A DNA stretch of 56,059 nt from Macrostomum lignano (taxonomy: Eukaryota): positions 1-56,059 of the forward strand of contig NIVC01001490.1 of NCBI GenBank assembly GCA_002269645.1, read 5' to 3'. Shown here in pieces: positions 6,101-51,600 of the stretch (position 1 is its first letter; each line of letters opens with the position of its first letter). The notes below the pieces were generated by a model, which was given only the letters and a program-made list of their open reading frames with translations, did no database searches and was not told the origin of the DNA. The translations under genes and the position numbers were made by a program.

Positions 6101-9100
6101 TGAGAACGCTTATAGAATAAATCATGCAGCAAAATGTGATAATAGCAGCAAAATTTGCATCAAAATCTTGATGAGCATATCCCTAAATTGTCTTTTTATC
6201 GAATATAAAGTACACCTGTTGTCTGCTATACAATAAAATACCTACACTGCCATCAACGTGATTCTCCACACTTTACTTTTGCAGTACAAGTGGAAGATCG
6301 TCGGTGGCACCAAAGCCATCAATGTGGACCAACAGGCGATCACAGGGAAATTCTTCCGACTGAGATCTGGAGTCCTGCAAGGAGGCCAGACCTACAACCT
6401 GAGTGTCTGCGCTTCCATGCCGACTTGGCCCAACGTGGCGTGCGGCTTTTTGCTTCTGGAGACGATCAGCCGCCCTCTGTTTCTCATGTTCGTCCGCGGA
6501 GGTCGCTCTGATCTCGGCGTCAGCGATGCACTGCAGGAATCCGTGTACATCATCGATCCGGACTACTCGACTGAGACGACATTATGCACCTTTTATCTGA
6601 CCAAATGGGCCAACGGTGAGGCAGTCTACATGCGCAACATGCACACTGGGACCATGCTGTCCTCATTCAGCTTCTTCGGTTCGGATGGAACTCAGACATC
6701 ATCGAACAGTATCCAAGTTCCTTGGCCGGACCCCAGCGTATACGAGCTACCCTCAGGCTTCATGAACCTTACCGTCAGTTGTCAGCGGGGTCAGCGAAGG
6801 TCCAGTCGTACAAAGCTTGTGCAGATTTTGCCTCGTCCACCTCCATCAGTTCGGATCTTGACCGAGCCGAGCAACAAACCAATCAATCCAAACGCTGCTG
6901 TCCCGGTGACAGCTTTAGTGATTGCCAGTGAGATAACCCAGATTCAATGGTCTGTGGATACTCAAGAGACTGGCTTTGGCTCGCTGTCGCTTCAGCAGTG
7001 CTCAGTAGGACCGCCGCTGGCCGATACATGCGTACCCAATCGTCGCTGCTTCATTACTTTGGTTCTCAAGCCAGGACGGAGCTGCAGATTTGCTGCCGGA
7101 GTCTCCTACCGACTGCTTTTGATCGCCAGCGCCAGTTCCGGGACCGCTCAGGCCCAGTTCGACTTCCGCGTGAATGCGCCACCAAGTGGTGGAGCACTGT
7201 CTGTGACTCCCAGCCAAGGAGCCGCTCTGGAGACCTCCTTCACGCTCACCATATGGCCGAATATCACTGACGATTCCGACGTGTCCTTCAGTTACAGCGC
7301 CATGTGCTGTCGCCAAGATTCATCAAGCCAGTGCGTCAGCGTAACTAGTGAACCAACGCCCGCTAGACTGCTCACCACTCGTCTACCTGGAGGAAACTGG
7401 ATCTGCAAAGCTTCAGCCATCGACTCTAACGGAGCAGGCTCCGATTGGTTCTCATTTACTACTGTAATTCAGGTGCAAGCGAAGCAGCTAACGCTTGCCA
7501 AGCTCGACGATTTACTAAACAACTTGAACAATATTTCAAACAGCTGTGAGCGTGATCAAATTATTTCCATTTTTACTTCAATTTCATCAAAATTAAATAT
7601 TAACTTGCATCGATTTCATATCTTGAATTATAGTTGACACTCCAGCACTATGCGGAATGATCCTGAGTGAGCCAGATACTGGCCTGTCAACTGAGGTAAA
7701 GAACAAGAAGCATGAGCTGGTGCAGGAACTGGCGATTCGGGATCTTCTGAATTTAGACACAAGGTATAAGTCGTGCTAAATAGTAATATACTTATAAACA
7801 GAAAACCAATCTGTCAATAGTGTGGAAAAACTCAAGGGCAGTATTATATTCAAACTTTATCGATAATTTTAGTGTGCCATCGGTTTCCTGTCTCAGGGCT
7901 GCAACAAGCTGTCAACTGTTTCGGAAAACGAAAGCCAACAGCCAGTACATAACAAACTTGGTACTGAGCACTCTTAAAAAGTGCCTTGATGCGTTTCACT
8001 CTCAGTCCTTTTCAACAACTTTGCCAAACAGCGCAAGAAGAAGGAGAAGGCGCAACACGTCGGGATCTCAGGGTGGAACAACAAGCAAAATAACTGCCAC
8101 TGAAGCGAAGTCCGTCCTCGACATCGCGTCCGGAGTCTATCACTCCACACTCGATTCGACGACAGCTGCTGATATCCAGGCTACAATTCTTAACACCGTT
8201 CCTGCCTTCTGCAACAGTCAAAATCCGAACTCGCTAGCTCAGGCGGCAGCGTCTACAATGGCTGTTGTACGCGTGTACAAGACGTCTTTCAACTCAGTCG
8301 GTTCAGCCAATCTGGAGATGGGATGCGACTCAGGAAGCACCGACTGTCTATCCAATTTCACAGTCCGTCAACAGGTTGCACTTGGAGACGATCTCGAGCA
8401 GCGCTACTATAACTGGTCATGTGGCCAGACTGACTGCTTCCAGGACGGTGCCTGCATCGGAACCATCCTGCTGGACAAGGATCTGCTCACTCCACAGGCC
8501 AAAGTGGCTTCTCCGACGATTTCTCCGCGACGCAGTCCTCTGGCCTACGTAGGAATATTTCACCCGAGCGACGGCGCGAACCAGAATGTTTCACGCCTCG
8601 GTGATGGCGTGACTATCACCACCAACATCAGTGGCTCTGTGAATCTTAGTAGCATCAGTCTCATCTGCCGCAGCTGGAGCGGAGCTGACTGGACCCCGGA
8701 TAACTGCACAACTCGCGCGCCATTCCAGACCGACGATGGCATCTGGCACGTAACGTGTGTGTGCCGTGACATATCTTCATTTATTGGCGTTTTTGAGGGA
8801 CCACCAGGCTTCCGACCGGAGACAACCATCGCTCCATCTACCACCGAAAGTGAGACTGGCCAAGCAAGGACGACGTTTGAAACAACATTTGAATCTCACT
8901 TAATGACTACAATTTTGAAGATGCATACCTCATCTGTGCCTCTTTCGAGTACCATCACTTCTACTCAGGCTCCCAGTAGTACGTCTGCGACACTTTCGAA
9001 AGCGTCGAGTTTGTCTAGCACTTCTCAGAGTACAATCATTTCTACTCAGGAACCCACTAGTACATCTGCGACACTTTCGAAAGCGCCGAGTTTGTCTAGC

Positions 9101-11836: not shown

Positions 11837-12046
11837 TGGCGTCCCTGGCACTGGCGTCCCTGGCACTGGCGTCCCTGGCACTGGCGTCCCTGGCACTGGC
11901 GTCCCTGGCACTGGCGTCCCTGGCACTGGCGTCCCTGGCACTGGCGTCCCTGGCACTGGCGTCCCTGGCACTGGCGTCCCTGGCACTGGCGTCCCTGGCA
12001 CTGGCGTCCCTGGCACTGGCGTCCCTGGCACTGGCGTCCCTGGCAC
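11837..12046. repeat. 15-bp minisatellite (TGGCGTCCCTGGCAC) x14
   Basis: Perfect tandem units read directly; ends ~280 bp upstream of the ATG at 12323. Confidence 0.97.
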
Positions 12047-12183
12047 TGGTGCCCCTTCATGGTAGCTAGTCAGATAAAATGGCGCCAATTCAAATGAGAT
12101 AGCGAATTTTTGCACAACTCAATTCATTACGCGTCTAGTTCTGTCTCCGCATGAAACTGAAGCTACAGGGAATAAGTTGCGGA

Positions 12184-15300: not shown

Positions 15301-18300
15301 TTGCTTGTCTAAAATGAGCCGGGAGTTTTACTGCGATTTTCTTTTTCTGTTCTTTATGTTGTTTAAAATCGACAATAAAGTCATTCCAAAAGTACAGGCA
15401 ATTATTCAAGTATTGCATTTCACTTTAGCTGAGATTTTTTCGTCCCGTTGAAGCTTTTCATCCCTGTACACTCGTAGTGTAAAAAAACTATCTTCTTGTC
15501 CTTGCCGACATAAAAAACTTACAGACGATCCAAAATCCACTATTTTTTACATTCCAGAACTCCCAGTTGACATTCCTGTATACCTGCCAGACTGGCTATG
15601 AGTACACTTCCGCGGCGCAACGTTTTACGAACTTCACTCGCCGTTGCAATGCCGCGGGTTCTTGGCAACCGGTTGAATTTCCGATCTGCCTGCCAAAATC
15701 CTGCGCTTTCCCTGACAGCGTCCCGGATGGTGCGGTGCCGACGCTGCAGATGTCCAGCTATACACCCCAGGGAACGGTAGCTGTTCAGAGCTATTCTGAT
15801 CCACAGAGTCTGCTGGTTCCCTTCAAATCCAAGCTGCTGTTCAACTGCTCAGACTCTGGCAGGATTGGCTACATGCAGTGCGGCCATAACGCCATCTGGG
15901 ACGCCAGCGGGCTGAACTGTAGCTGTTCGAATTTCACTGTTTCCGAGGCCTCCTGCTGCATACCTGTGGTGCCGAATGCGATTCTCATCCAGCCCACTGG
16001 TCTCGGTGTCTCTGAGAAGCCTTTGAATTTTACGCATCAGTGCTTAGAAAACTACTCAAGTCCCTTGAACTCCAGCCTTACTGTCGCGTCTGGCACGTGC
16101 AACATTCTTGCAAACGGAAGCCAGGGGCAATGTCTCTGCGAAGCAGCAACGCTAGCTGGCGGATATCCGTTCAGCTGTGAGCCGAGCCCCTGCACTGAAC
16201 CGCCACCTCAAGTGAACAATTCCATGGCAACGGTGCTCTACGGGGACACCGCTAAGCCGCTGACGCTGCCGCATAACTCGGCCTTCCCTGTTGGTCAGGT
16301 TGTGCGATACGCGTGCGACATTGGCTACAAGCCGGTCAGGTTGGATAACGAAACAATTGTCGGGACATTCTTGGAGGCCACCTGCGAGATCGGCAACCGT
16401 TGGTCTCCGATCCGCTTTGAGTGCTCCTTAGTCACCTGTCCCGGGGTGAAGTCCTACTCATGGGTGGACTACTATAAAGTCTTACCTAACGTCACCGAAC
16501 AAAACTTTACAGCTTCAACAACCGAAACAAGCCAGGTACTTCCATACAAGACCCAGCTGCGGTGGTTTTGTCACGGAGATCACCTTAAAATTCCTGGCGC
16601 CTCCGATGAGCAAGAATGCACCAAGACTGGAGAATGGTCGTGGCTCGGCAAAGGCAAAAGAGCATTTTTCTGCGTCCGTAAGTTAAACAGTTTCTTTGAT
16701 CTTGTCACTTTACCACTATTATCACTGCTTAGTGACGTCAGTTTCTATCTGAATATTTCTTGGAAATTTTTATGATAATTTTTGAACTGGTGATGTTTTG
16801 AACTTTAATTTTAAACCCCAGCTTAAAAGGCAATAAATTTGTTACTACCTTCATAGGAGCTTGCAGCAACGCCGTCCTCAGAAACAGCATCTCTGGAGAC
16901 AACGGCTTGGTGCTTTTTTCTCCCTACTCAACCAATTTGCTGTCACATTGGTTCCGATTTCATTACCCAAACAACCATGCATCTCTGGTGTGCAACTGGA
17001 CTACCAGTTTGCTGCATGGAATTCCGATGTCTCCCAGCTTCGTCAGTTACAACTGGACAGTGAATTGCAATGTATATTCCAATAATGCCAACTGGACGAG
17101 TGACTTTGCACCGGACATGAACGGATTGCAACTCTGTCCGCAGCACAACTGTTCTAATTTAAGCATATTTGTTGAAAATGCCTCAATAACGAGTATCGGC
17201 AACCCGATGGAGATGTTCGTCACCGTCAGCTGCCTGCCCGGGCACACAATTCGAAGCCCGGTGGTGGCGAACAAGACAACCATTGCCTGCAACCGGACTT
17301 CCGGGAAGTGGAACGCCACTGCAATCTGCGAGCCAGTCACGTGCGACAATCTGCCTTTCAATGCATCAGTTTCCGGGTTGATGAACCTAACTGCACCTTT
17401 CCAACTCAGCCAGAAGGGTGAAATATTGCCAGTGCATTGGAATGCCACCGGGTTTTCACTCTACTCCAAGGTGCATTACCTATGCCAGATTCTGTCTGTT
17501 GTGAATGACAGCAACACGTGGAGGCCTTTTCAGTGCAGGATTGGACGTGATGGCCTCAGGGGTAGCTGGGAGGATGTGAACCCCTCGTCATCGTTCACTA
17601 CTCTGAGCTGTTCACGTGAGTATGTGTGCAGTAAGATTATCTTGGAACATCAGGTGAGGCAGAAAACACTCTATTCTTTCAGACTACTGCCGAATATCAG
17701 CTCTAACAAGTGTAGTCGGTCCAGGAAACGCAACCTTCCGTTCACTCATCACAAGTACAGGCTATGTCGAGGGCTCAGCCGAAGCCACAGTGCAGTGCTG
17801 GGCGGGAAACTACTTCACATTAGCTCGTGGGAAGTCATACAAGTCAGCTGGAACTGTCAATTGCAAAGAGGGCAGCTGGGACATAGAAGATGCTCGAAAA
17901 GCAAATGCTAGCGTCGAGCTCTGTCGCAAGCTGCCTTGCGAGCCGCTGACGAACTTGACGAACCTTGACCTGTTCAGTGTGACGTCAAGTGAAATCCTCA
18001 ATAAGGCGACACGCCACGAGCCGGGCGCGGAAGTGTTGCTGCAGTGCCACCCGATGTACTATTTCGAAGCGATCAATGAAACTAAAAAGACAGCAACCTG
18101 TCTGAACAACTCAGTCTGGAGTTTCGCCTCAAACTGCCAGGCCCAGCTGTGCCCGGGTCTGCCTCTGGCAAATGAAACTGAGGCAATCGCGGCTCGAGGT
18201 CTGGCGCCGCACTTTCCCAACAGTCTGGGCTCGGCCGAACCCAGCGCACTGTCCGGCCAGCCCCGGCTACTCTGGTTGGCTACGCGTGTCGAAGCAGCCT

Positions 18301-21490: not shown

Positions 21491-22319
21491 GAGGTCCCGC
21501 ATGAGAACTGTGAACATAGTGACGTCATGCAAGAGAACTGGGCACATGTTGAGGTCACGCATGAGAACTGGGCACATGTTGAGGTCACGCATGAGAACTG
21601 GGCACACTGTGAGGTCGTGCATGAGAACTGGGCACACTGTGAGGTCGTGCATGAGAACTGGGCACACTGTGAGGTCGCGCATGAGAACTGGGCACACTGT
21701 GAGGTCGTGCATGAGAACTGGGCACACTGTGAGGTCGTGCATGAGAACTGGGCACACTGTGAGGTCGCGCATGAGAACTGGGCACACTGTGAGGTCGTGC
21801 ATGAGAACTGGGCACACTGTGAGGTCGTGCATGAGAACTGGGCACACTGTGAGGTCGTGCATGAGAACTGGGCACACTGTGAGGTCGCGCATGAGAACTG
21901 GGCACACTGTGAGGTCGTGCATGAGAACTGGGCACACTGTGAGGTCGTGCATGAGAACTGGGCACACTGTGAGGTCACGCATGAGAACTGGGCACACTGT
22001 GAGGTCGTGCATGAGAACTGGGCACACTGTGAGGTCACGCATGAGAACTGGGCACACTGTGAGGTCGCGCATGAGAACTGGGCACACTGTGAGGTCGTGC
22101 ATGAGAACTGGGCACACTGTGAGGTCGTGCATGAGAACTGGGCACACTGTGAGGTCACGCATGAGAACTGGGCACACTGTGAGGTCGTGCATGAGAACTG
22201 GGCACACTGTGAGGTCACGCATGAGAACTGGGCGCACTGTGAGGTCGTGCATGAGAACTGGGCACACTGTGAGGTCGCGCATGAGAACTGGGCACATGTT
22301 GAGGTCACGCATGAGAACT
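21491..22319. repeat. 30-bp minisatellite (GAGGTCGTGCATGAGAACTGGGCACACTGT) x~27
   Basis: Tandem units with GTCGTG/GTCGCG/GTCACG variants read directly. Confidence 0.97.
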
Positions 22320-23443: not shown

Positions 23444-23750
23444 CTAACCGGAAATCAGGTGCTCATCGTCCTCATCTGACAGGCCGCCCACCTGCTGGTA
23501 GCGTCCGTTGCTGCTGTCGCCGCCTCCGCCGCCGCTGCGGCACACGAAGTCGCAACCGTCGGCCAGACAGTCGCCGAATCTTCGCCAAACGGTGTAGTTC
23601 GGAATGGATTCGAGTCCGCGACGCTTGAATACGAATCGTTGAATTGCGGCGCCAATCAGCAGGTAGGAGATGAACAGGCTGAGCAAAACAATCAGCGCGA
23701 TAGCCGAGGCAGGCAGGCCGCCCTGCGGCTGCTCCAGGCTGCACAGGCGT
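23444..23750 (-). CDS. M6PR: M6PR exon 3 (TM helix and cytosolic tail)
   Basis: [25 protein letters not shown]; [11 protein letters not shown]; GCDFVCR; YQQV; terminal acidic DEHLI. Confidence 0.92.
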
Positions 23751-26700
23751 CTGGAAATCAATTGCGGCTTGGGATGCTGATGGACACAGTGGGGATATTG
23801 GGGGCTGCTGATGGACACAGGGGGATATTGGGGGTTACTGATGGACACAGGGGGATTTTGGGGGTTACTGATGGACACAGGGGGATATTGGGGGTTACTG
23901 ATGGACACAGGGGGATATTGGGGGTTACTGATGGACACAGGGGGATTTTGGGGGTTACTGATGGACACAGGGGGATATTGGGGGTTACTGATGGACACAG
24001 GGGGATTTTGGGGGTTACTGATGGACACAGGGGGATATTGGGGGCTGCTGATGGACACAGGGGGATATCTAATCTTCTAATCTTCTAATCTTCTAATCTA
24101 ATCTAATTCTAATCTTCTAATCTTCTAATCTTCTAATCTTCTAATCTTCTAATCTTCTAATCTTCTAATCTTCTAATCTTCTAATCTTCTAATCTTCTAA
24201 TATATCTAAAGTAGCAACCCCCCCCTCCACCGGCCCTGTCTGTCTGTGGGTATGTAACAGGTTATCTCCCAAAAGGCTCAACCGATTTTCTCCGTTTCTT
24301 CGCCAAAAGATGTCAAATGTGCCCGGGACGGTACATGTAATTTTATTAAGCTCTAGCTCAATGCTAAGGGGATTAAATATTCGAAAAACTGTTTTAAATG
24401 GCCTTTTTAGTGTATTTTTTTATCAGCCTGCGCGCAGCGAGAAACTTCACAGCCAATTTTAATGATTGCGCCAGAGCCAACTGATAAGAAAATTCACTTT
24501 GCCCCACTGCCCAGATAATTACTCTATTTAACTTGCGTAACCAATTAAGGGGGGGTATAATGAAAATTCTGGATGCTTCCAATATACTAAAAAAAATATA
24601 CTAAAAATCAAAACTTCCATTCCAATATACTAAAAATCAAAACTATGTACCTATAGGAACCTTCGTGTAACTTGGCTCTACATGGTCGGAATTTCGCGGG
24701 GTTTTCTGCATTCGATGCGTATTGATGGCGCGCTGGTACACGAAATTTTGCTAAGAAATTGCTTCATTTTTTCGGGCTTAAATATTCGAAAAACTCGATT
24801 TTTGCCCCGCATTTTTAAGTTCAAACAGTTCTTTCCAATTGAGAAGCATTCTGACTGCCGATGGAATTGTATCGCATCATAACTCAGTGCCAACTATAGC
24901 ATTGGTTCTCTACACTGGCGTAGAGAGCTATAAGCGTTGAAAGGTTGCGCAACACCTTTTAGTTATTGAATTGAGGGGCGGGTATTGCCATTCAATGAGT
25001 CCCGGGCATTGGCTTGGTTGTGAATTTCAATGCATCAACTGCAGGCCTCTCACTGTAGCTGGCGCTGAATGTACACCTTTATGAATTTGACTGCTTTAAA
25101 GCAGGAATATCAAACCGTTGTTTGTGCTTCGAGTTTTTCACTTTCAGAAGAGAGCCTTGTATTGCTGGAAAGAGCTAGAAACGCTGAGTTCGAGAATATA
25201 ATCTGTTTGCTGAGATTTGAAAAATTAAAAGCACAGCATAAAAAAGAAATTTCTATACTTTTTACTCTATATTCTCATTGTACGCTCTCTCATATCGCAA
25301 ACCCCTATTTATCGCAACTCCACTATTCAAGCCAGCGCCATTAGATCTAAATTTAGATTGCGTAACCATATTGTTGACTTTAATTGTTGACTTTATTAAT
25401 TGAAACTGATATTGACTGCCTGAGAAATTGATTACGTCGTAACTGCTTCGAGTGATTTCTACTCTATGCTGGGAGTTTTCAAAGTGTTGAAATATATAAG
25501 TGCTACAATTCATGTTATCAAAACGATGAGAGCTAGCCTAGAGGTAAACAGACTGAACTGCTAATGCAGCGACGTGGGTTCGAATTTTTAGAGTGTTGAA
25601 GTTTTTTATTAAAAAAATTAATTTCAAGAAAGCTAAAGGAATCTTAAAAATGTCAAGTAAATCAGGTAAAAGAGAAGAAGCTACGAGCGTTCATGTAGTA
25701 TAATCAAAAATTTTATTCAACTTTAAATTTTGAAAAGTTTTAAAAAGGACTATTCCAATAGATAAGAAATTAATTATTGTAATAGCTGACGAAATTGTTT
25801 CACAATCTTGCTGGGGGTACTTTCTATCAGGGGATGCTTGCTATCGGAAGGACGCTTGCTTTTGGGAATGCTTGCTCGGGGGAGATTGCTAACTGGGGGA
25901 ATCACTGAGATGTCAAGGCTTAGTGGGGAAATTCCTGAGATGTCAAGTCTTAGAGGGGGGAGGGAATTGCTGAGATGTCAAGGCTTAGAGGGGGGAGGGA
26001 ATTGCTGAGATGTCAAGGCTTAGAGGGGGGAGGGAATTGCTGAGATGGCAAGGCTTAACAGGGACTTGCTGAGATGCCAAGGCTTGGTGGGGAAATTCCT
26101 GAGATGTCAAGTCTTGGTGGGGAAATTCCTGAGATGTCAAGTCTTGGGGGGGGGAGAATTGCTGAGATGCCAAGGCTAAAGAGGGACTTGCTGAGATGCC
26201 AAGGCTTAAGAGGGACTTGCTGAGATGTCAAGGCTTAAGAGGGACTTGCTGAGATGCCAAGGCTTAAGAGGGACTTGCTGAGATGCCAAGGCTTAAGAGG
26301 GACTTGCTGAGATGCCAAGGCTTAAGAGGGACTTGCTGAGATGCCAAGGCTTGGTGGGGAAATTCCTGAGATGTCAAGTTTTAGGGGGGGGGGGGAATTG
26401 CTGAGATGTCAAATGCTTAGAGGGACTTGCCGAGATGTCAAGACGTAAGACGGAATTGCTGAGATTTCAAGGCTTGGGGGGGAATTACTGAGATGCCAAG
26501 GCTTGAGGGCGAATTGCTGAGATGTGAAGGCTTGGGGGAATTTCCGAGATGTCAATGCTTGGTGGGGAAATTCCTGAGATGTCAAGTCTTAGAAGGGGGA
26601 AATCTGTGAGATATCAAGTCTCAGGGGGGAATTGCTGAGATGTGAAGGCTTGGGGGAATTTCTGAGATGTCAAAATCTTAGGGAAGGGAATTGCAGAGAT

Positions 26701-29700
26701 TTCAAGTCCTGAGGGCGAATTGCTGAGATGTCATGTCTTTGGGGGGAATTCTATGGATTGGGGATTCTTTGAATGAGGGAGGGTGCTTCTAATATATATC
26801 TTTGGATAGTGATTCATTGGGGAATTCCTTCGTTGGGGGATTACTAAATCGATGAAAGGTTCTTTGAATGGGGGATTCTTTAGCTGAAGGCTTCTTTCTA
26901 TAGAGTGATCCTTTGGATATGAGATTATTTGGGGGGGATTCTTTATGAGGGGATTCTTTGGATGGGGAGTATTTCGACGGTGGTTCTTTAGATGAGGGGA
27001 TTCTTTGGACAATGATTCTTTTGATGGGGGATTATTTGAATGGGAGATTCTTAAGAGGGGGATTCTTTGGATAGGGGTGGATGGGGGATTCTTTGAATAG
27101 GGATGGATGGGGGTTCTTTGGATAGGGATGGATCTGGGGTTCTTTGGATAGGGATGGATGGGGGGTTCTTTGGATGAGGGATTCTTTGAACGGAGATTCT
27201 GTGGAGGTCAAGTCTTAGGGGGGGGGGATTGCTGAGATGTCAACGCTTTTGACTAGGAGAAATTGCTAAGATGTCAAGATTTACTAGGGGGAATTACTGA
27301 GATATAAAGACTTACTGGGTGAATTACTGAGATGTCATTGCTTAATGGGAAATTCCTTAGATGTCAAGTCTTACAGAGGGGAATTGCTGAGATGGCAAGA
27401 CTTACTTCGGAAATTACTGAGATATAAAGGCTTACTGGGGGAATTTCTGAGATGTCAAGGCGTGGGGGGAATTTCTGAGATGTCAAGACTTGAGACGGGG
27501 AGAAATTGCTAAGATGTCAAGTCTTAGGGGGGGGGGTAATTACTGAGATGTCAAGGCTTAAGGGTAATTTTTGAGATGTCAAGTCTTGGGGAGGGGAATT
27601 ACTGAGATTTCAAGGCTTGGTAAGAATGATTCATTGGGAACTTCTTTCGATGGGGGATTCTTTCGATGAAGGGTTCTTCCGATAAAGGGATCTTTTGGAT
27701 TGGATTGGATTTGGATTGTTTGGACGGAGATTATTTGCATGAGGGGATTCTTTAGATGGGGGTTATTTGGATGGGTGTTCTGTAGATGAGGGGATTCTTT
27801 GGCCAAGGATTCTATTTGGATGGGAGATTCTTTGGATTCTTTGGATGGGGGGTTCTTTGGATTCTTTGGATGGGGTTTATGTTAATGGGGATTATTTGGA
27901 TGTGGATTCTTTAGAGGGGGGTTTTCTGGAGGGGGATTCTTTGGATTCTTTGGATTGGGATTATTTGGACGGGGGTTCTTTAGATGAGGGGATTATTTTG
28001 TCAATGATTTTTTAGATAAGGGATGATTTGGATTTCAGAATCTTTGGATTATTTAGATGGGGATTTTGTGGATGGGGATTATTTGGATGTCGATTATTTA
28101 GATGGGGATTCTTTGGATAGGGATGGATTTGAGATTCTTTGGATGGGGATTCTGTGTATGGCGGATTCCTTGGATAGGAAATTCATTGGATGGGGATTCT
28201 TCGAATCAGGATTCTATCAATGGGGGGCTCTTTGAATGGAGGATTCTTTGGATATAGGATTCTTTGCATGTGAGATTCTATGGATGGGCGATTCATTGGA
28301 TGGGGAATTCTTCAGATAGGAGGATTCCTTTAGTGGGGAATTGTGTGGATTGTGTGGAGTGGGGAATTGAGTGGATTCTATCGATGGAGGTTCTTTAGAT
28401 GGCGGATTCTTTGGATAGTGAATTCTTTGCATGTGAGATTCTTTGCATCAGAGATTTTATAGATGGGGGATTTTTTGGATGAGGGATTCTTTGGATGTGG
28501 GATTCAGTGGGGTGAAATTTTATTGCGTGGAAAAACTGTGATTGGAGTTTGGACGGAAAGCCCCAACGGGGGTTGGAATTGGCTAGTTGGGGGCTACTGA
28601 TGGACACAGGGGGATATTGGGGGCTACGATGGACACAGGGGGATATTGGGGGCTGCTGATGGACACAGGGGGATATTGGGGGCTACTGATGGACACAGGG
28701 GGATATTGGGGGCTACTGATGGACACAGGGGAATATTGGGGGCTGCTGATGGACACAGGGGGATATTGGGGGCTACTGATGGACACAGGGGGATATTGGG
28801 GGCTACTGATGGACACAGGGGGATATTGGGGGTTACTGATGGACACAGGGGGATATTGGGGGCTACTGATGGACACAGGGGGATATTGGGGGCTGCTGAT
28901 GGACACAGGGGGATATTGGGGGCTACTGATGGACACAGGGGGATATTGGGGGCTACGATGGACACAGGGGGATATTGGGGGCTGCTGATGGACACAGGGG
29001 GATATTGGGGGCTACTGATGGACACAGGGGGATATTGGGGGCTACTGATGGACACAGGGGGATATTGGGGGCTGCTGATGGACACAGGGGGATATTGGGG
29101 GCTACTGATGGACACAGGGGGATATTGGGGGCTACAGATGGACACAGGATATTGGGGGCTAGTGATGGACACAGGATATTGGGTGCTAGTGATGGACACA
29201 GGATATTGGGTGCTACTGATGGACACAGGATATTGGGTGCTAGTGATGGACACAGGATATTGGGTGCTACTGATGGACACAGGATATTGGGTGCTAGTGA
29301 TGGACACAGGATATTGGGTGCTACTGATGGACACAGGATATTGGGTGCTAGTGATGGACACAGGATATTGGGTGCTACTGGACACAGGATATTGGGTGCT
29401 AGTGATGGACACAGGGGGATATTGGGGGCTGCTGATGGACACAGGGGGGTATTGGGGGCTACTGATGGACACAGGGGGATTTTGGGGGTTACTGATGGAC
29501 ACAGGGGGGTATTGGGGGCTACTGATGGACACAGGGGGATTTTGGGGGCTACTGATGGACACAGTGGGGATATTGGGGGTTACTGATGGACACAGGGGGA
29601 TATTGGGGGCTGCTGATGGACACAGGGGGATATTGGGGGCTACTGATGGACACAGGGGATATTGGGTGCTACTGATAGACACAGGATATTGGGTGCTACT

Positions 29701-30565
29701 GATGGACACAGGGGGATATTGGGTGCTACTGATGGACACAGGGGGATACTGGGTGCTACTGATGGACACAGTGGTGGATGCCAGGAAGCAGTACAAAGAA
29801 TTGAGCAATTCCCCCGCTCCGCACCTGTGCAGCAGCTCGAACAGCGAGTAGCAGCCAGACCCGTTGCCCATGGCAACCCGGCCGATATAACGGAAACTAC
29901 CACTGCGCTCGGTGGCATCGCAGATGAGCATCGTGTGAGCTGACCAGCCCACTGTGCTGCTGCAGTTGCCATCGGCCAAGTCCTCGGCACTGGCCTTGCC
30001 GCCCATGTACACCAGCTCCACCCAGCCGCGACCGGCAGTGGCATAGAACTGGCCCCAGCGACCGAGCACTCGATTGCCGGCAGCTTTGTCCAGCTGGACC
30101 AGGCCAGCCCCAGCCAGACTCGAGTCCGCGTCCGAGCACAAGCCGAATGCAAACTGGCCAGATGAGTCCTTCACCCTGAGCAGTGATAGGCCAGTGAGAT
30201 TATCAAGTTAAGAATTGAGTTCATTGGATTGAAATCACCAAAAGCCTGTCTGCCCCCTGGTTCTCTGTCTGTGACCCCTACTAATTTGTACTAATATTTG
30301 ATTTTGGAGCTCCTCAAAAACTTTGCTTGAGTTGAGTTAATTTTGTTGCTTAATTATGATTTTTAAGTTAAAATACATTTAGACATTAAAAAAATTCTGT
30401 ATGTGATTCATAAATACCATATTAATTTATACTTGATACTTACTTTAGTCCAATAAGATCCTTGAGGATTCCTTTTTCCAAGTTATTGAAGTATTGCTCA
30501 CATGACAATGAACATACAATGTGGGCCATACTACTTAAAAATGCTATTGATATGAGTAGCTTCAT
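23444..30565 (-). CDS. M6PR: Cation-dependent mannose-6-phosphate receptor homologue (CD-MPR/MPR46-like), complete, 259 aa
   Basis: Exons 30565-30444 (122 nt, signal peptide [19 protein letters not shown]), 30175-29825 (351 nt, MRH domain with [15 protein letters not shown]) and 23750-23444 (307 nt, TM and tail with [21 protein letters not shown]). Total 780 nt; all junctions GT-AG and phase 2. Confidence 0.9.
23766..24067. repeat. 30-bp minisatellite (GGGGATATTGGGGGCTACTGATGGACACAG) x~10, left part
   Basis: Tandem units read directly; same unit and orientation as 28587-29775. Confidence 0.95.
24069..24200. repeat. (TCTTCTAA)n simple repeat at the Helitron 5' end
   Basis: About 15 copies read directly. 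Confidence 0.9.
25527..25586 (+). pseudogene. tRNA-derived fragment (Ser-GCT-like anticodon loop), probably a SINE head
   Basis: A-box-like TAGCCTAGAGG at 25534-25544, arm CTGAA-CTGCTAA-TGCAG, B-box-like GGTTCGAAT at 25577-25585; no acceptor stem 3' half. Confidence 0.35.
25810..28500. repeat. Degenerate G-rich satellites inside the Helitron: ~29-bp (GGGACTTGCTGAGATGCCAAGGCTTAAGA) and ~14-bp (GGGGATTCTTTGGAT) blocks, alternating
   Basis: 29-mer blocks ~25860-26735 and ~27205-27620; 14-mer blocks ~26740-27200 and ~27625-28500. Confidence 0.85.
28587..29775. repeat. 30-bp minisatellite, right part (~40 units including shortened variants)
   Basis: Same unit as 23766-24067; ends ~50 nt from the M6PR exon 2 donor. 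Confidence 0.95.
29825..30175 (-). CDS. M6PR: M6PR exon 2 (MRH domain)
   Basis: FAFGLC...GAGLVQLDK...WVELVYMGG...C...MLIC...GCYSLFEL aligns motif by motif with vertebrate CD-MPR. Confidence 0.9.
30444..30565 (-). CDS. M6PR: M6PR coding exon 1 (signal peptide and first Cys)
   Basis: ATG at 30565, donor GTAAGT after 30444; phase 2 joins the acceptor at 30175 to give K-V-K-D. Confidence 0.8.
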
Positions 30566-33906: not shown

Positions 33907-34900
33907 CTAGAGAGGTGCCGACAGCACATGGTTGACCATTGGGCGCAGGAGACGGAGGCAACCTCCCGACTGCGGCAGGTAGCGTGAAATGGCGCCGCTG
34001 CTCCAGCCGCCCAGCCGCTTGATCTGCTCCACGTCGAGGCCGCTGTCGAACGCCAGACAGGCGCCACCCCGTCGTAGAGAGTGGCCTGAGAAAGCTGTCG
34101 CCGCCCAACCCGCATCTGTCAGAGCCCGAGCGAGGCGGCGGTCGAATTGACGCGATGAAATCGGGCACCAGCTTCCGGCGATGTGGACGCAAAACAGCTG
34201 AGTGAGCGCCGGCGCAGACCGCAGCTTGTTAGTCTGAAAATGCCGCCGCAGGGCTTGGACAGGACAAAGTGGGTGGCCTCCGAGTACTGGCAGCACCGCC
34301 TCCTGGTATTCTTGTCCGCATTGGTTGGTCTTCGATTGTCGAACTCGGTGTCTCCAGCACTGAATGTCGCCGAGTGTCGCCGACAAGAATGGAGTAGCGC
34401 CCGCAGACATTTGCTTTCCTGAGAAGCGCCCAGAAGCAGCAGAGCACGGCGGCCCAAAAGGCGGCGTCTGCAGGGTCTCTTGGGTTCACCTGGTTTGCCA
34501 GTGAAAGCAGAACCGCCAGGGTGATGGGGTCTTTCTGCTTGACTGAATGGCCGCTTGTCCGTTTGGCGCTCTTAACTGCCAGATCGATCAGGCCGGACTT
34601 GGTGATGTCGGGGAGTTGCGCCAGCTTGAAGCTCCAGCTGATGGCCGCCAGGTGTCCACCGAGGCTACCGGGTGCCACGCCGCGCTTAGCCAAGCGTCGC
34701 ACATACTCGACCAGGTGCACCGGGGACGCCGCTAGTGGCTGAACACCTTCGAGGTTGTAGAAGCGCTGCCACTGTTCGAGGTTTGAAGCGTACGATGCCC
34801 TCGTACTAGGAGCCCAGGCGTCGGCGAGAAAGCGAAGGAGCGGCCCGGGTAGGCGGGAGGCAGGAGGCGCCAGACCTGCAAAAGCAAAAGGGAGGCGGAG
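33907..34900 (-). pseudogene. Tyrosine recombinase of the retroelement, frameshifted by a 10-nt duplication
   Basis: AWAPSTRASY..., ALLR, SKT, HSLRRGG, GGW, SRY (catalytic R-K-H-R-W-Y all present); TGTCGCCGA repeated at 34365-34373 and 34375-34383. Confidence 0.88.
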
Positions 34901-34989
34901 GCTTGGCAGAGCGCATGGCGCGAGATGCAGCAGGATTCAGCAGCTAAATCATACAGGCTACGGTAGAAGCGGAGAAAGAAATTCTGCGC

Positions 34990-36318
34990 CCCGATTCTAG
35001 AAGCAAGGCGAGAGGCCGGGTCCGCCAGGGCCTGGAAGGCGCCTGGAACGTGAAAGGCCCGCAGCCGCAGACTCCACGCGTCGCAGGCAAGCGACAGCGT
35101 GTGCAGGAGCCGGTTGACGTCGTTACATGGCGAGCTGAGCTTGTTCAGCGCACCGACAGCCGCCGAGCTGTCGCTGTACACGACGATATCCGCACCGGCG
35201 AAGCGGCCCGGGGCCGCGAGGATGCTGAGGACAGGCGTGATGGTCTCCTTAACGTTGATGTGGGCCGAAGCAAAACGGCCACCAGCGTCGTTCTTCCAGT
35301 TGATGTAGAGCCAGTCGGACTTATTGGCCTCCCGAACAATGCAGGCACCACCCGAGTTGCAGGCGTCAGTCTCAATGACGATCCTTCGAGCGTAGCGAGG
35401 CCAGATGGGCGCGCAGCCAACAGACTGAAGGCTTCTCCTCCACCAGTGCAGCAGCTCAGTGAGGTGCGGGGTCAGCCGCAATTTGTCACCAGGTCTAGTC
35501 GCCCGGCTCGCCAGCATCAGTAGAGGGCGGATGGAAGCTCAGCCTTTCCTGGTCACGCTGCTTACCCAGGACAGCTTGCCGCAGATCCGCTGAATGTCGC
35601 GCTTGCTGATGGCACCGCGTCGATGCAAGCAGCTCCCAAGTGCGTCTTCGAGTGCACTGAGCTTTGCCGGTGGGATGCTCAGCATCCCCGACTTTGTGTC
35701 AATCAGGACGCCCAGGAAAACCGTGCGCCGCGACGGCCCGCTAGACTTCTTTTCGTTGATGGTGAAACCGAGGCTCGTCGCCAGGCTTCTCAAGCTCTCG
35801 TAAGCCTCGACACAGGCCTCGTAGGTGCTCCCGTGGTCGTGGTCGCAACCGCAGAAATCCGCAACGAGTGGTGCCGCCCGTAGCCCTGGTTGAGCTATTG
35901 AGGGCTCGAGCCTGGTCTCGAACCCGGGACCTCTGAGCATACTCGGGATATTCATGTCGCTACTACAATCAGAGGGCTCATTAAGAAGCTGTTGGTCCAC
36001 CTCACCTGGTCTAAATCGGCCTTCCAGCTGCTGGCGCATTGCTGCCGTCTCCGATTCCAGGCTAGCTATCTTCCGCCGGAGCTCTGCTAGGTCCAGCGCC
36101 TCCCCTGCCTCCAGCCTTTGTTGCTGCTGCTGCCGCCGACCTTCGCTGTCGGTCTCCGCGGAGTTTGACGCCGCTTGTTCCCGCCGACTAGCTGCTTCGT
36201 TCTGGTTCATCGCAGTGGAGAGTCTGCTGACCAGGTCTTTCTTGTAGCCATGCGTGCTCAGACCCCTATCTCTCAATTCTTCACGTAGCTGATTTACAGT
36301 CATCCTACGCAAACTCAT
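34990..36318 (-). pseudogene. SAP domain fused to RT C-terminal (thumb) region and DIRS-type RNase H; in-frame TGA at 35541-35539
   Basis: MTVNQLREELRDRGLSTHGYKKDLVSRL (SAP); LGFTINEKKS..P....FLGVLID (RT C-terminal); IETDA, HINVKE, VYSDS, HVPG...ADPASR (RNase H); the two ORF-track ORFs share one frame. Confidence 0.85.
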
Positions 36319-45617: not shown

Positions 45618-48600
45618 TCAGTTCTCGACTCTGGACATTTCGATAGATCCGCCTCCCTGTGTATTGCCTGGTGTTGGAAAGAAAAGGTGACTGTAACTTA
45701 CAACTGGCAAATTTGACAATGAGTCCTGTTTGTGATAAAATTTATAAGCTCTTCTACTTTTGACAATAAGACCCGAATCAAAGCTACTTACTTCTAGCCA
45801 GCAGGCTGGCACGGGAGTTGCCGTTGCCGCGTTCACCGCCCACATCGACTCGGCTGCCGCTACGGCCTTGGCCGGCGCTGGCCCTGCTGCCGCTCCTAAC
45901 GTTGCTCTGCGATTCATCGGCGACTTTTGACGTTTGGGAGCTCTTCTTCATCAGCAGAACGATGACCACAATAGCCACAATTAGGCCAATACCTCCTAGC
46001 GAGGCTCCAACAGCTATGGCGACGATGTTGCTGCCATCGCCATCGACAATCACAGCATCTGTCTTCACGTCCAGCACCTGCAGATAGTCCCAGGACACGC
46101 TCAGGCTGCTGTTGCTCAGGTCTAGAAGAACTAACTGGCGGTTGTTCATGAGCTGCACAAGCAGTTGGGTAGCGGATGAGGCGCTAGTATTAGCACCAGA
46201 CTGGCTGTTGATGGTAAAACTGATCAAGACGCTACCACTCGTGAACTGCATGTTAGTAATTTGCGACTCGCTGAGCCTGAGCTGACGTGCGATCTGACTC
46301 GTTAGGTGACCTCGAAGACTGGTTTCACTTGTAACAACGCTGGAAAACGACTCTGTGACCTTGATCTGCAGCGTCACAGCTGAGGTCTGTGTCTCCGAGA
46401 GGGTCGGAGCAGTTACGCTGGGAGCCACGGTTGTTGACGTTGTTGCCGTTGTTGGGCCTGTGGTACTTTCAGAGGTAGATGGAGCGATGGTTGTCTCCGG
46501 TTGGAAGCCTGGTGGTCCCTCAAAAACGCCAATGAATGAGGATATGTCATGGCACACACACGTTACGTGCCAGATGCCATCGTCGGTCTGGAATGGCGCG
46601 CGAGTTGTGCAGTTATCCGGGGTCCAGTCGGCTCCGCTCCAGCTGCGGCAGATGAGACTGATGCTACTAAGATTCACAGAGCCACTGATGTTGGTGGTGA
46701 TAGTCACGCCATCACCAAGGCGTGAAACATTCTGGTTCGCGCCGTCGCTCGGGTGAAATATTCCTACGTAGGCCAGAGGACTGCGTCGCGGAGAAATCGT
46801 CGGAGAAGCCACTTTGGCCTGTGTAGTGAGCAGATCCTTGTCCAGCAGGATGGTTCCGATGCAGGCACCGTCCTGGAAGCAGTCAGTCTGGCCACATGAC
46901 CAGTTATAGTAGCGCTGCTCGAGATCGTCTCCAAGTGCAACCTGTTGACGGACTGTGAAATTGGATAGACAGTCGGTGCTTCCTGAGTCGCATCCCATCT
47001 CCAGATTGGCTGAACCGACTGAGTTGAAAGACGTCTTGTACACGCGTACAACAGCCATTGTAGACGCTGCCGCCTGAGCTAGCGAGTTCGGATTTTGACT
47101 GTTGCAGAAGGCAGGAACGGTGTTAAGAATTGTAGCCTGGATATCAGCAGCTGTCATCGAATCGAGTGTAGAATGATAGTTTCCAGATGCGATGTCGAGG
47201 ACGGACTTCACTTCAGTGGAGGTCATTTTGCTTGTTGTTCCACCCTGAGATCCCGACGTGTCGCGCCTTCGCCTTCGCTTACCAAGCACGCCATTTGAAA
47301 AAACTTGTGAGACTTGAGAATTGAAAGCATCTAGACATTTTTTCAGAGCATTCAGTACCAAGTTAGTTATATACTGGCTGTTGGCTTTCGTTTTCCGAAA
47401 CAGTTGACAGCTTGTTGCAGTCCTCAGACAGGAGACCGATGGCACACTGAAAGAATATATGTAGATATAGATATGCACTACGGAAACAATTAACGCTTTT
47501 GCGTGACACAAAAAGAATTCATTAAAAAGAAGTAGAAAAGTGGCGAATTCGTTATATTCTAGACAAATTCAAATTCCACAGAATTCTTACTTGATGTCTA
47601 GAGTCATAACGTCCCGAATCGCCAGTCCCTGCACCAGCTCATTCTTCTTGTTCTTTTCCTCAGTTGACAGGCCAGTATCCGGCTCATTCAGAATCATACC
47701 GCCCAAAGCTGGAGCGTCAACTATAATTTAGGATATGAAATCGATGCAAGTTATTATTTAATTTTGATGAAATTGAACTAAAAATGGAAATAATTTGATC
47801 ACGCTCACAGCTGTTTGAAATATTGTTCAAGTTGTTTAGTAAATCGTCGAGCTTGGCAAGCGTTAGCTGCTTCGCTTGCACCTGAATTACAGTAGTAAAT
47901 GAGAACCAATCGGAGCCTGCTCCGTTAGAGTCGATGGCTGAAGCTTTGCAGATCCAGTTTCCTCCAGGTAAACGAGTGGTGAGCAGTCTAGCGGGGGTTG
48001 GTTCACTAGTTACGCTGACGCACTGGCTTGATGAATCTTGGCGACAGCACATGGCGCTGTAACTGAAGGACACGTCCGAATCGTCAGTGATATTCGGCCA
48101 TATGGTGAGCGTGAAGGAGGTCTCCAGAGCGGCTCCTTGGCTGGGAGTCACAGACAGTGCTCCACCACTTGGTGGCGCATTCACGCGGAAGTCGAACTGG
48201 GCCTGAGCGGTCCCGGAACTGGCGCTGGCGATCAAAAGCAGTCGGTAGGAGACACCGGCAGCAAATCTGCAGCTCCGTCCTGGCTTGAGAACCAAAGTGA
48301 TGAAGCAGCGTCGATTGGGTACGCATGTATCGGCCAGCGGCGGTCCTACTGAGCACTGCTGAAGCGACAGCGAGCCAAAGCCAGTCTCTTGAGTATCCAC
48401 AGACCATTGAATCTGGGTTATCTCACTGGCAATCACTAAAGCTGTCACCGGGACAGCAGCGTTTGGATTGATTGGTTTGTTGCTCGGCTCGGTCAAGATA
48501 CGGACTGATGGAGGTGGACGAGGCAAAATCTGCACAAGCTTTGTACGACTGGACCTTCGCTGACCCCGCTGACAACTGACGGTAAGGTTCATGAAGCCTG

Positions 48601-51600
48601 AGGGTAGCTCGTATACGCTGGGGTCCGGCCAAGGAACTTGGATACTGTTCGATGATGTCTGAGTTCCATCCGAACCGAAGAAGCTGAATGAGGACAGCAT
48701 GGTCCCAGTGTGTACGTTGCGCATGTAGACTGCCTCACCGTTGGCCCATTTGGTCAGATAAAAGGTGCATAATGTCGTCTCAGTCGAGTAGTCCGGATCG
48801 ATGATGTACACGGATTCCTGCAGTGCATCGCTGACGCCGAGATCAGAGCGACCTCCGCGGACGAACATGAGAAACAGAGGGCGGCTGATCGTCTCCAGAA
48901 GCAAAAAGCCGCACGCCACGTTGGGCCAAGTCGGCATGGAAGCGCAGACACTCAGGTTGTAGGTCTGGCCTCCTTGCAGGACTCCAGATCTCAGTCGGAA
49001 GAATTTCCCTGTGATCGCCTGTTGGTCCACATTGATGGCTTTGGTGCCACCGACGATCTTCCACTTGTACTGCAAAAGTAAAGTGTGGAGAATCACGTTG
49101 ATGGCAGTGTAGGTATTTTATTGTATAGCAGACAACAGGTGTACTTTATATTCGATAAAAAGACAATTTAGGGATATGCTCATCAAGATTTTGATGCAAA
49201 TTTTGCTTCTATTATCACATTTTGCTGCATGATTTATTCTATAAGCGTTCTCAGAGTACTGTTACTTACACTCAGAGTGTCGATAGCCTTGGTATAGCAA
49301 AATGAAGGTCGGACAATAAGCACAGCGCTGTACCACAGATCGGGCTTCACATACTTTTGCGGTCCGTAGATACTAATGCTGAATGGCGTTCGTTCAACGA
49401 GTCGTTTTACTACGATGCTCGCCGTATTTGACTGTGTTCCGCATTCGTTCTGGGCAGAAGCCGTGATGTTGTATGACTCGCCAGGCGGAATCTGAAGAAG
49501 AAAGCAAATATTTGAGACTGTGAGCTTTATGATTTTTTGAGTAAAATCTTCTGACTTAAGCGCTTGAGATCACTAACATCCTTTCCGGCGTAGAAAGTGA
49601 CTTCTGTGGAAAACTTCGACTGGAATGCAGCCAGCTCAGTTGCTTGACAGGTTGAGCCTGCAGCACACCGGATGTCCCAAGTGATCTGCTGCACCATCGA
49701 TCCACTGATGATGGCATACAGGGTGAACGAGTCACAGAGTCCGACGGTGGCCACCTGGTTGGCATCTGATTGGACTCCGGCCAAAAAGATGACAGGTGGC
49801 TTTCGATCGTTTGCATTCACAACAGCGGTGCTGAAACTGGAACTGGTGGCCAGGCTGATGTCGCTGCCACCCACATAAATGATATTCGAATTGATGCTGA
49901 TTCGCGAGCCAGAGCAGATTGTTGCGCCACGACCTTTCCACACGATGAGAGCGTTTGCCCTCGCGTAGCACTTTGGGCCTGAACCCATCAGCGCAAAAGT
50001 CGACGCATCAAAAATGGCCGAGCACGCCGTCTGTCGCAGCTGGATGTTTGTGTCAAACTCGAGATGCAGGTGGTAGCCAATGGCGTCATCAGTTGCTGAG
50101 AGCAGCACCGGACCCTTACTCGAGCGGATCGAGAACGGCAGAGAGTTGTGCCTGGTCGGCGATTGCAAGAGTTGTAACCGATGTGTCACTTGGTGTAAAT
50201 CATTGCATTCATACTTGCAGCAATAAAAACAAACCACTCACTTGAACACCGCATATGCATCGTAGCTGATTGTTTGCAGCTTGCAGTTCATGACGCTGAG
50301 CTTCCATTGTAGCGGCTGTCGGACTTCGGCCAGCGCAGAGATATTGCAGGTGACGCTTGTCGCGCTGTCGAATCTGGCCGGCACAGTGAGAAAGCCAGTG
50401 CGCGGGTCGCATCGGGTGTGGCGGCTAAGATCGTCGCAGTAGAGAAGGCAGACGAGATCGGGCGTGTTGACGAATCCCTGTCCGCTCACTGGCAGAGAGT
50501 AAACGGGATTTTCTAGCGTGAGTCCGGTCCCGACACTCATGCTGGACAAGTTGGGAGGTCCAAAAACAGTCAAGTTTCCACCGGAAACGTCCTCGATGAC
50601 TGTAGCACCGGAAGCGGTCAAGTATTTCACCTGTAGAGCGTACTCGCGAGCAACGAGACCCGAGGGCACAGAAAAGCGGAACAGACCAGAAGATACATCG
50701 ATGGATATTGCTTGAAGCTCCGTGTAGAGCGACTGTCAATGTGAGGGCGGAGAAATTAGTTTGTATTTTATCAACGTAAATTGCACACTTAGAAACTGAA
50801 GCTTTAAAATGTTGAGTAATTCTGGAGTTTTGGTCTATTTTGCTTATATTCACCTACATCTACAATCAGTGTTAGTAAACCTTTAGGCGCGTTGCCACTA
50901 AATTAGGCCATTATTCGTCACTATTAGGATAAACGTCTTGTACTTTTTTTTCGCCGCGTTTTACATCGTCGTGTAATTTACATTCGTGCAATTTGATAGC
51001 GGTGTACGTAAACGAGCCTTTAGTTATATTATTGCAACAATGGAATTTACGTCTTACCCGATCGGTCACTTTCAGCAGGCGCAGAAGATTTTTGATGATT
51101 GTGAGGTTGATGCTGCTGCTGCTGATTGTCACTTGCTGATAAGCAGCGTATGACCCCACGCAAGCGTTTCGGGTAATCGTGAAGTGGATCCGAGCACAGA
51201 TGTCTCTCTGCGGGTCGCTGGGCTGCAGACAACGACCGCATTTGTCAAGAGTCTTTCGGAGACGACCGATGGCTCAGCGACACCGTCACAGCCTGTGATG
51301 CAGGAAGTGTCGTTGCTGCAGCCGCAGGGTCCTACGCCGAAGTTGGCCGCTCTTCCGGTGCTTCCCTCGGTGCAGAAGCCGCACTTATTGATGCGCGCAG
51401 TGCTGTTCACTTTACCATCGCACCACACCGATCGAATGTACTCATCAGCAGTCGCAAATCGACTGGAATTGTAGCACAGGCCAGGCATTGGCGAGACAAA
51501 GGATCCGTTGCATCGACCAGCGCAGTCCTTTCCATAACGCATGGCTTTGCCAGTTCTTCCACCAACGCAGTTGCCACAGTCGTTCCAGATCGCTGTGCCA

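Follow-up and report, generated by a model that had tools for sequence, protein, structure and literature searches.

A single-domain CD-MPR homologue of Macrostomum lignano with a changed sugar pocket and a largely retained sorting tail

What might a mannose-6-phosphate (M6P) receptor carry once most of the residues that contact the sugar have been replaced and its sorting tail has stayed largely in place? The question is raised by a gene on contig NIVC01001490.1 of the flatworm Macrostomum lignano (assembly GCA_002269645.1), which encodes a relative of the cation-dependent M6P receptor (CD-MPR); the whole contig, 56,059 bases, constitutes the window analysed here, and we refer to the window gene and the window protein throughout. 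Overall, we believe that the protein is a sorting receptor or chaperone-like carrier, in which a CD-MPR scaffold would have had its pocket remodelled for a ligand other than M6P and would cycle among the trans-Golgi network (TGN), the endosomes and the cell surface. We put this reading at roughly 60%, on the strength of the sequence, a predicted structure and analogy with characterised relatives. The original prediction for this locus, a Golgi-endosome cargo receptor with a non-M6P ligand, thus appears to be the interpretation that the sequence supports best.

Gene structure and family membership

The gene lies on the minus strand in three coding exons, with a coding sequence of 780 nt that translates into 259 residues (numbered here with the initiator Met as 1). 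All exon junctions are GT/AG and the split codons rejoin in frame, and the spliced peptide is 100% identical to the M. lignano entries PAA63991/PAA67351, BOX15_Mlig013714g1 (also A0A1I8FYQ6). Its parts are as follows.

30444..30565, minus strand: coding exon 1, with the ATG, the predicted signal peptide, the first lumenal cysteine (C22, or C18) and the N-terminal helix
30176..30443, minus strand: intron 1, 268 nt, AT-rich, GT..AG
29825..30175, minus strand: coding exon 2, the MRH beta-barrel core, residues 42-158, with all four pocket positions
23751..29824, minus strand: intron 2, 6074 nt, GT..AG, largely minisatellite
23444..23750, minus strand: coding exon 3, with the last lumenal cysteine C161, the transmembrane helix, a 65-residue cytosolic tail and a TAG stop
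23642..23716, minus strand: predicted transmembrane segment, residues 170-194 (AlphaFold helix 174-199 in P0001 numbering, pLDDT above 90)

Exon 1 ends in ...GLK, its Lys codon split by a GTAAGT donor, and matches residues 1-41 of PAA63991/A0A1I8FYQ6 at 100%. Exon 2, which carries four of the six lumenal cysteines (C54, C112, C126 and C149), is bounded by an AG acceptor at 30177-30176 and a GT donor at 29824-29823, and the interval singled out in the original prediction, 29825-30175, coincides with it exactly. The lumenal motifs named there are likewise found on the minus strand: GAGLVQ at 30094-30111, the 10-residue motif bearing W118 at 29920-29949, FRYIGR at 29878-29895 and CYSLFE at 29836-29853. 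The tail motifs GCDFVCR (23537-23557), YQQV and DEHLISG* belong to exon 3, some 6 kb further downstream. The public gene models, which are marked partial, begin a few codons ahead of the ATG in the same frame.

A 516-aa open reading frame (ORF) at 28624-30174 (minus strand) was considered as the gene and rejected. It reads exon 2 straight into a 30-bp minisatellite that is open in frame by chance, and it is an artefact because the repeat stays open, the true exon 2 ending at the GT donor given above. A separate UniRef entry, A0A1I8J2A0 (P0003), describes a 206-aa isoform that skips 12 residues, at about 29825-29860 of the window, by what appears to be the use of a GT inside exon 2, 36 nt before its donor; such a splice would delete C149 together with the Tyr143 position, and the entry probably reflects an error of gene prediction and not genuine splicing. 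A tblastn search of the window returned no second CD-MPR-like sequence.

By sequence and predicted fold, the protein is a true CD-MPR homologue, as had been proposed. Exon 2 alone finds bovine CD-MPR chains as its best match in the PDB (E 5e-8) and the Pfam family PF02157 at E 3e-9, and the full protein matches PF02157 at E 1.9e-34 and 119.4 bits (cut-off 25.4), over profile positions 49-252 of 254. Among 1.84 billion cluster representatives, phmmer recovered 204 homologues, with CD-MPRs as the best of them and the top non-self match only 38% identical. An AlphaFold model built from a 43-sequence alignment reaches a predicted local distance difference test score (pLDDT) of 83.7 overall, exceeding 90 in the barrel and in the transmembrane helix, as against a pLDDT of only 42 for a single-sequence model. 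When the model is compared with the PDB by Foldseek, 14 CD-MPR chains come out on top (E 2.5e-10 to 1.6e-8, template-modelling score 0.61-0.68), followed by CI-MPR/IGF2R domains. All six lumenal cysteines are present, as the equivalents of Cys6/52/106/119/141/153 and their three disulfide pairs. The hydrophobic N-terminus, the transmembrane residues 170-194 and the 65-residue tail suggest a type I topology, with a single MRH domain rather than the multi-repeat architecture of Drosophila LERP.

The sugar pocket and the cytosolic tail

In every characterised sugar-binding MRH domain, the quartet that in bovine CD-MPR comprises Gln66, Arg111, Glu133 and Tyr143 hydrogen-bonds the hydroxyls of mannose. 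Structural and mutagenesis work on the bovine receptor by Roberts, Olson, Dahms and colleagues is said to have found that single substitutions within this quartet abolish binding. MRH domains have one common mannose-binding site (PMC9388126). Where a functional M6P receptor has Gln66/Arg111/Glu133/Tyr143, the window protein reads Q/W/R/S.

Q68, 30094..30096, minus strand: equivalent of bovine Gln66, the sole quartet residue retained
N111, 29965..29967, minus strand: equivalent of bovine His105, a phosphate contact; D-G-N-C as against bovine D-N-H-C, creating an N-C-S sequon
W118, 29944..29946, minus strand: equivalent of bovine Arg111, which is lost
R140, 29878..29880, minus strand: equivalent of bovine Glu133, with the charge reversed
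S151, 29845..29847, minus strand: equivalent of bovine Tyr143, which is lost; CYSLFE as against C[FY]YLFE in the family

The same assignments had been made by eye in the original prediction (Q kept, R111 to W, E133 to R, Y143 to S, H105 to N), and they are reproduced by HMMER against bovine CD-MPR and by three MAFFT alignments, of 115 family representatives, 10 sequences and 31 sequences, all of which agree. Occupancy of the pocket was judged from the sequence register, with the flanking cysteines as anchors, and from the positions of the predicted strands; strands 120-128, 136-144 and 151-159 of the model (P0001 numbering) sit where the pocket residues would be expected. Loss of these three quartet residues does not depend on the details of the alignment, because an adjacent conserved cysteine anchors each position; there is no Arg or Lys among the 13 residues separating C112 and C126, and no Asp or Glu among the 18 residues preceding C149.

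Changes extend to the rest of the pocket. Asn104 is replaced by Gly and Arg135 by Ala or Met, Asp103 is kept if one counts back from Cys106, and the loop before the Cys106 equivalent bears a 5-residue insertion. The phosphate and cation contacts Asp103, Asn104, His105 and Arg135 are consequently not conserved as a set, in a family where the Asp103, Asn104 and Arg135 positions are variable and His105 is conserved in 44 of the 115 representatives. As for the quartet itself, Gln is found in 83 of these representatives, Arg in 89, Glu in 76 and Tyr in 90, and all four occur together in 62, against the one that the window protein keeps. We infer from the sequence that the lumenal domain is no longer able to bind M6P or mannose in the canonical way.

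Could binding of M6P or of high-mannose glycans have been retained by means of compensating residues, for example with Arg138/Arg140 contacting the phosphate and the sugar ring stacked against Trp118? The equivalents of Gln66 and Asp103 are kept, two arginines lie on the Glu133 strand, Trp is able to stack on a pyranose, and Arg111 is replaced by Trp in homologues from Hemiptera and Orthoptera too (Rhodnius, Ranatra and Gryllus). Nonetheless, three of four quartet residues essential in characterised MRH domains are changed, one of them with a reversal of charge, when one substitution is reportedly enough in the bovine protein, and the loop insertion before Cys106 adds to these changes. We regard retained binding as very unlikely. 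A pocket lined by Gln, Trp, Arg and Ser would instead recognise a different glycan or a protein determinant, in keeping with the remodelled sorting receptor that we favour. The substitutions in the window protein cluster at ligand-contact positions. Of the 35 alignment columns shared by 70% or more of the family, 26 are kept, including every cysteine and Tyr96/Gly99.

The tail is the best-conserved portion of the protein in distant matches, and the conserved columns kept within it are Tyr, Gly, Arg, Gly, Pro, Trp, Gly, Asp-Gly, Arg, Tyr and Asp. Its predicted signals are the following.

23585..23590, minus strand: V212-W213, equivalent of the Phe18-Trp19 endosome-to-TGN retrieval signal, with Trp kept and Phe replaced by Val
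23537..23560, minus strand: DGCDFVCR with C224 and C228, equivalents of the palmitoylated Cys30 and Cys34 of the mammalian tail
23489..23500, minus strand: YQQV, a YxxPhi signal at the site of mammalian YRGV
23453..23479, minus strand: SDEDDEHLI, a CK2-type serine (S249) in an acidic cluster together with a [DE]xxxL[LI] / DxxL[LI] signal two residues from the C-terminus

A role has been described for Cys34 of the mammalian tail (PMC2199859). The Tyr of YQQV is conserved in 82% of family representatives, and DDEHLI fits the definition of the [DE]xxxL[LI] signal recognised by AP-1 and AP-2 (PMC9109462). The protein ends in DEHLISG*, at 23444, so that the DxxLI stands two residues from the C-terminus just as had been stated. 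The broader proposal that all sorting signals are kept holds for the palmitoylation cysteines, for YQQV and for the acidic DxxLI, and goes slightly too far in that FW has become VW and LL has become LI; judged from sequence, the tail thus carries the expected set of sorting signals with these two deviations. Rotifer homologues end in ...DDDILSP, which indicates that the C-terminal dileucine-type signal drifts in Spiralia. Taken together, the palmitoylation cysteines, the YxxPhi motif and the acidic dileucine-type signal would allow entry into clathrin/AP carriers, and perhaps GGA carriers, and their retention suggests that the protein still cycles among the TGN, the endosomes and the plasma membrane.

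Duplication, constraint and the distribution of relatives

M. lignano has a second CD-MPR-like family, which we call paralogue B (P0008: PAA69411 / Mlig021630g2, PAA75374, PAA89673). Like the window protein it belongs to PF02157 (106 bits) and has an incomplete quartet, here Pro/Arg/Glu/His, so that Arg111 and Glu133 are kept along with Arg135, and Gln66 and Tyr143 are lost. The two proteins are about 34% identical. Paralogue B ends in the canonical DDDHLLPG where the window protein has DEHLISG, and its gene has two coding exons, with an intron at about the alignment position of intron 1 and without the minisatellite intron 2 of the window gene. Neighbour-joining places the two proteins, each on a long branch, as sisters with the support of 74 of 100 bootstraps, and the best explanation of their relationship would be that the window gene arose in a duplication shared with paralogue B. 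The paralogue B gene at NIVC01001326.1 (L004 3001-5566) adjoins a PMC2NT/3'-5' exonuclease/HRDC (Rrp6-like) gene, and the UniRef cluster of paralogue B includes a 1032-aa entry labelled 'ATP synthase-coupling factor 6', probably a fused gene model.

The existence of such a sister also lends some substance to another view, in which the window protein itself binds no lumenal cargo and serves as a scaffold or through its tail, for instance by forming heterodimers with paralogue B or regulating it, or as a trafficking factor in the manner of Atg27 for Atg9. CD-MPR is a dimer; fold and tail are conserved and the pocket is dismantled; and the Pfam ATG27 profile (PF09451) shows a weak similarity across the transmembrane segment and tail (residues 177-234 only). 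That similarity, however, scores 17.3 bits against a cut-off of 27 and is below threshold, and the equivalent of Gln66 and the GAGLVQ loop around it are kept exactly, which hints at constraint on the pocket region. All lumenal disulfides and many core positions are kept as well, although these would be needed equally for dimerisation and do not discriminate between the two views. We consider a cargo-free role unlikely, and a receptor with its own non-M6P ligand remains the reading we prefer.

The window gene is present at three genomic loci (NIVC01001490, NIVC01001794 and NIVC01003912) with identical coding sequences; among them, identity is 99.6% over intron 1 and 1.7 kb of upstream sequence, and 95.5% over the first ~960 nt past the stop. 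The lower identity downstream, set against identical coding sequences, is mildly suggestive of constraint on the coding sequence. A stronger indication that the gene is under selection comes from the old split from paralogue B, since the short linear motifs and all the disulfides persist in spite of an identity of about 34%.

These observations bear directly on a third alternative, namely that the window gene is a redundant duplicate in decay, which lost its pocket once selection for ligand binding ceased and has yet to degenerate in its remaining parts. M. lignano became polyploid recently and has many gene copies, and there are three near-identical loci each for the window gene and for paralogue B; the window protein sits on a long branch, with at most 38% identity to any other protein, and the word-limited and profile searches showed no orthologue in other species. 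At the same time, the frame is open over three exons with canonical splice sites at all three loci, and unselected sequence would have lost the cysteines and tail motifs that survive the old split. The substitutions, moreover, are gathered at ligand contacts rather than scattered at random, and the public gene models are presumably transcript-derived, judging from how the assembly was annotated. Decay is in our opinion a distinctly unlikely explanation, and the evidence of constraint is more readily accommodated by a functioning receptor with a remodelled pocket.

The window protein is not alone in having lost much of its quartet; the case is less singular than it might seem, with paralogue B incomplete and many arthropod homologues degenerate. 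The degenerate members to which a genus can be put are all pancrustacean (Rhodnius, Ranatra, Homalodisca, Gryllus, Schistocerca, Zootermopsis, Procambarus, Penaeus, Hyalella, Hirondellea and Darwinula). Their 'CD-MPR-like' proteins, such as Rhodnius XP_073977177, resemble the window protein in having a single domain with the quartet largely replaced and the cysteines and a dileucine tail kept, and differ from it in tails that end in ...LLHP, ...LLSP or ...LLRP. The degenerate pancrustacean set includes P0059, P0093, P0071, P0049, P0040, P0046, P0064, P0035 and P0030. Flatworm and pancrustacean sequences form separate clades in the tree, and the losses of the quartet in the two groups are therefore independent. 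The quartet is kept in the cnidarian Rhopilema, the priapulid Priapulus and vertebrates, and in most bdelloid rotifer homologues, of which three are without Glu133.

Several points weigh against the reading of the window protein as a non-M6P sorting receptor. The three genomic copies are so young and similar that their identical coding sequences are no proof of purifying selection. Word-limited and profile searches, including a focused profile that reached rotifers, found no orthologue in other flatworms, a result that is not evidence of absence. In the tail, VW stands for FW and LI for LL, and LI fits the AP-type [DE]xxxL[LI] signal and not the strict GGA signal DxxLL. Finally, that these particular substitutions would cost the protein its M6P binding is argued by analogy from the mutagenesis reported for the bovine receptor.

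Regardless of how the balance falls for this one protein, a wider proposal can be framed, which we offer as possible and no better than doubtful: that Macrostomum, and possibly flatworms widely, have no CD-MPR with an intact pocket and have reused the scaffold and tail for M6P-independent cargo, in parallel with the separate losses among insects and crustaceans, where Arg111 has likewise changed to Trp in some members. Both M. lignano families would then stem from one duplication, each lacking part of the quartet. If this were true, single-domain CD-MPR-like proteins would represent a recurrent and uncharacterised class of non-lectin sorting receptors in invertebrates. To our knowledge, the only characterised non-M6P homologue among M6P receptors is the CI-MPR-type LERP of Drosophila. 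A literature search found no paper on the window protein, on flatworm M6P receptors or on the degenerate arthropod CD-MPR-like proteins, and nothing on GNPTAB, GNPTG, the uncovering enzyme or CI-MPR/LERP in M. lignano; a review describes M6P receptors as "not well defined in invertebrates" (PMC9109462). The gain from the present analysis is incremental rather than surprising. A single-domain homologue with a dismantled pocket and mostly intact trafficking signals nonetheless provides a compact and tractable case in which to ask what such a scaffold carries, in a model flatworm amenable to RNA interference and transgenesis.

Genomic setting and comparison with known systems

About two thirds of intron 2 is minisatellite, and the length of the intron in the three genomic copies is 6074, 6335 and 6330 nt. 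The arrays within it, and the other features around the gene, are listed here.

23777-24068: array of a 30-bp unit, 9.7 copies, abutting one splice site of intron 2
28587-29771: array of the same 30-bp unit, 40.8 copies, abutting the other splice site of intron 2
25895-28505: G-rich arrays of 15/16/29-31 bp within intron 2, GC skew about +0.5
21491-22319: 30-bp tandem array, 27.6 copies, 94% matches, open in four frames
11837-12049: perfect 15-bp tandem array, 14.2 copies
15567-16775, plus strand: Sushi/SCR-repeat ORF (E 3e-9), about 7 kb downstream of the window gene
33907-36318, minus strand: SAP-domain ORF (E 6e-10), in a GC-rich block (61% GC, 34-36 kb) upstream of the window gene

On each strand, several frames of the 30-bp repeat of intron 2 are open and yield ORFs of 400-516 aa at 28624-30174 (minus strand) and 28587-29851 (plus strand); annotation that relies on ORFs is easily misled here. 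An inverted duplication of about 9.6 kb, in 7 blocks that are 79-98% complementary, occupies both ends of the contig (90-9578 and 46059-55801). It contains long ORFs, among them a REJ-domain ORF (polycystin/PKD-REJ-type) at 6258-7637 (plus strand), with a mirror copy at 47717-49096 (minus strand). Either a large gene is present as two copies in opposite orientation on the two sides of the central 36 kb, or the duplication is an artefact of assembling a polyploid genome.

Among known systems, bovine CD-MPR is the natural point of reference for the window protein. The two share a single MRH domain with three disulfides, a type I arrangement, a similar length (259 as against about 277 aa) and the same predicted fold; the GAGLVQ loop and the tail motif ADGCDFVCR are identical, and both proteins have a YxxPhi motif and an acidic-cluster dileucine-type signal close to the C-terminus. 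They differ in that identity is only about 26-33% and the N-terminal region of the window protein is shorter; in that Arg111, Glu133, Tyr143, His105, Asn104 and Arg135 are replaced and five residues are inserted before Cys106; and, in the tail, in VW for FW and LISG for LLPM.

Yeast Mrl1 and Atg27 are the classic CD-MPR-like scaffolds used without M6P. Like the window protein as we picture it, they have a type I topology and one MRH-like domain, and they travel back and forth between Golgi and endosomes. The original prediction had drawn the parallel both to them and to LERP, and it is the comparison with LERP that stands as a concept, with binding residues lost and a lysosomal role; that with Atg27 is weak, at 17 bits against 27, and the sub-threshold match indicates no specific relationship of Atg27 to the window protein.

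Drosophila LERP, an M6P receptor homologue without the conserved M6P-binding residues, has been linked to lysosomal function and binds clathrin adaptors (PMC4610224, PMC3127973). LERP differs from the window protein in being of the CI-MPR type, with five MRH repeats rather than a single CD-MPR-type domain, and the two are homologous only at the level of the MRH fold. The quartet is absent from most CI-MPR repeats as well, and both LERP and these repeats are clear precedents for its loss from an MRH domain. In this context, LERP represents the closest functional analogy to the window protein, whose own function, if it does carry a non-M6P ligand between the TGN and the endosomes, would run parallel to that of LERP on a scaffold of one domain.

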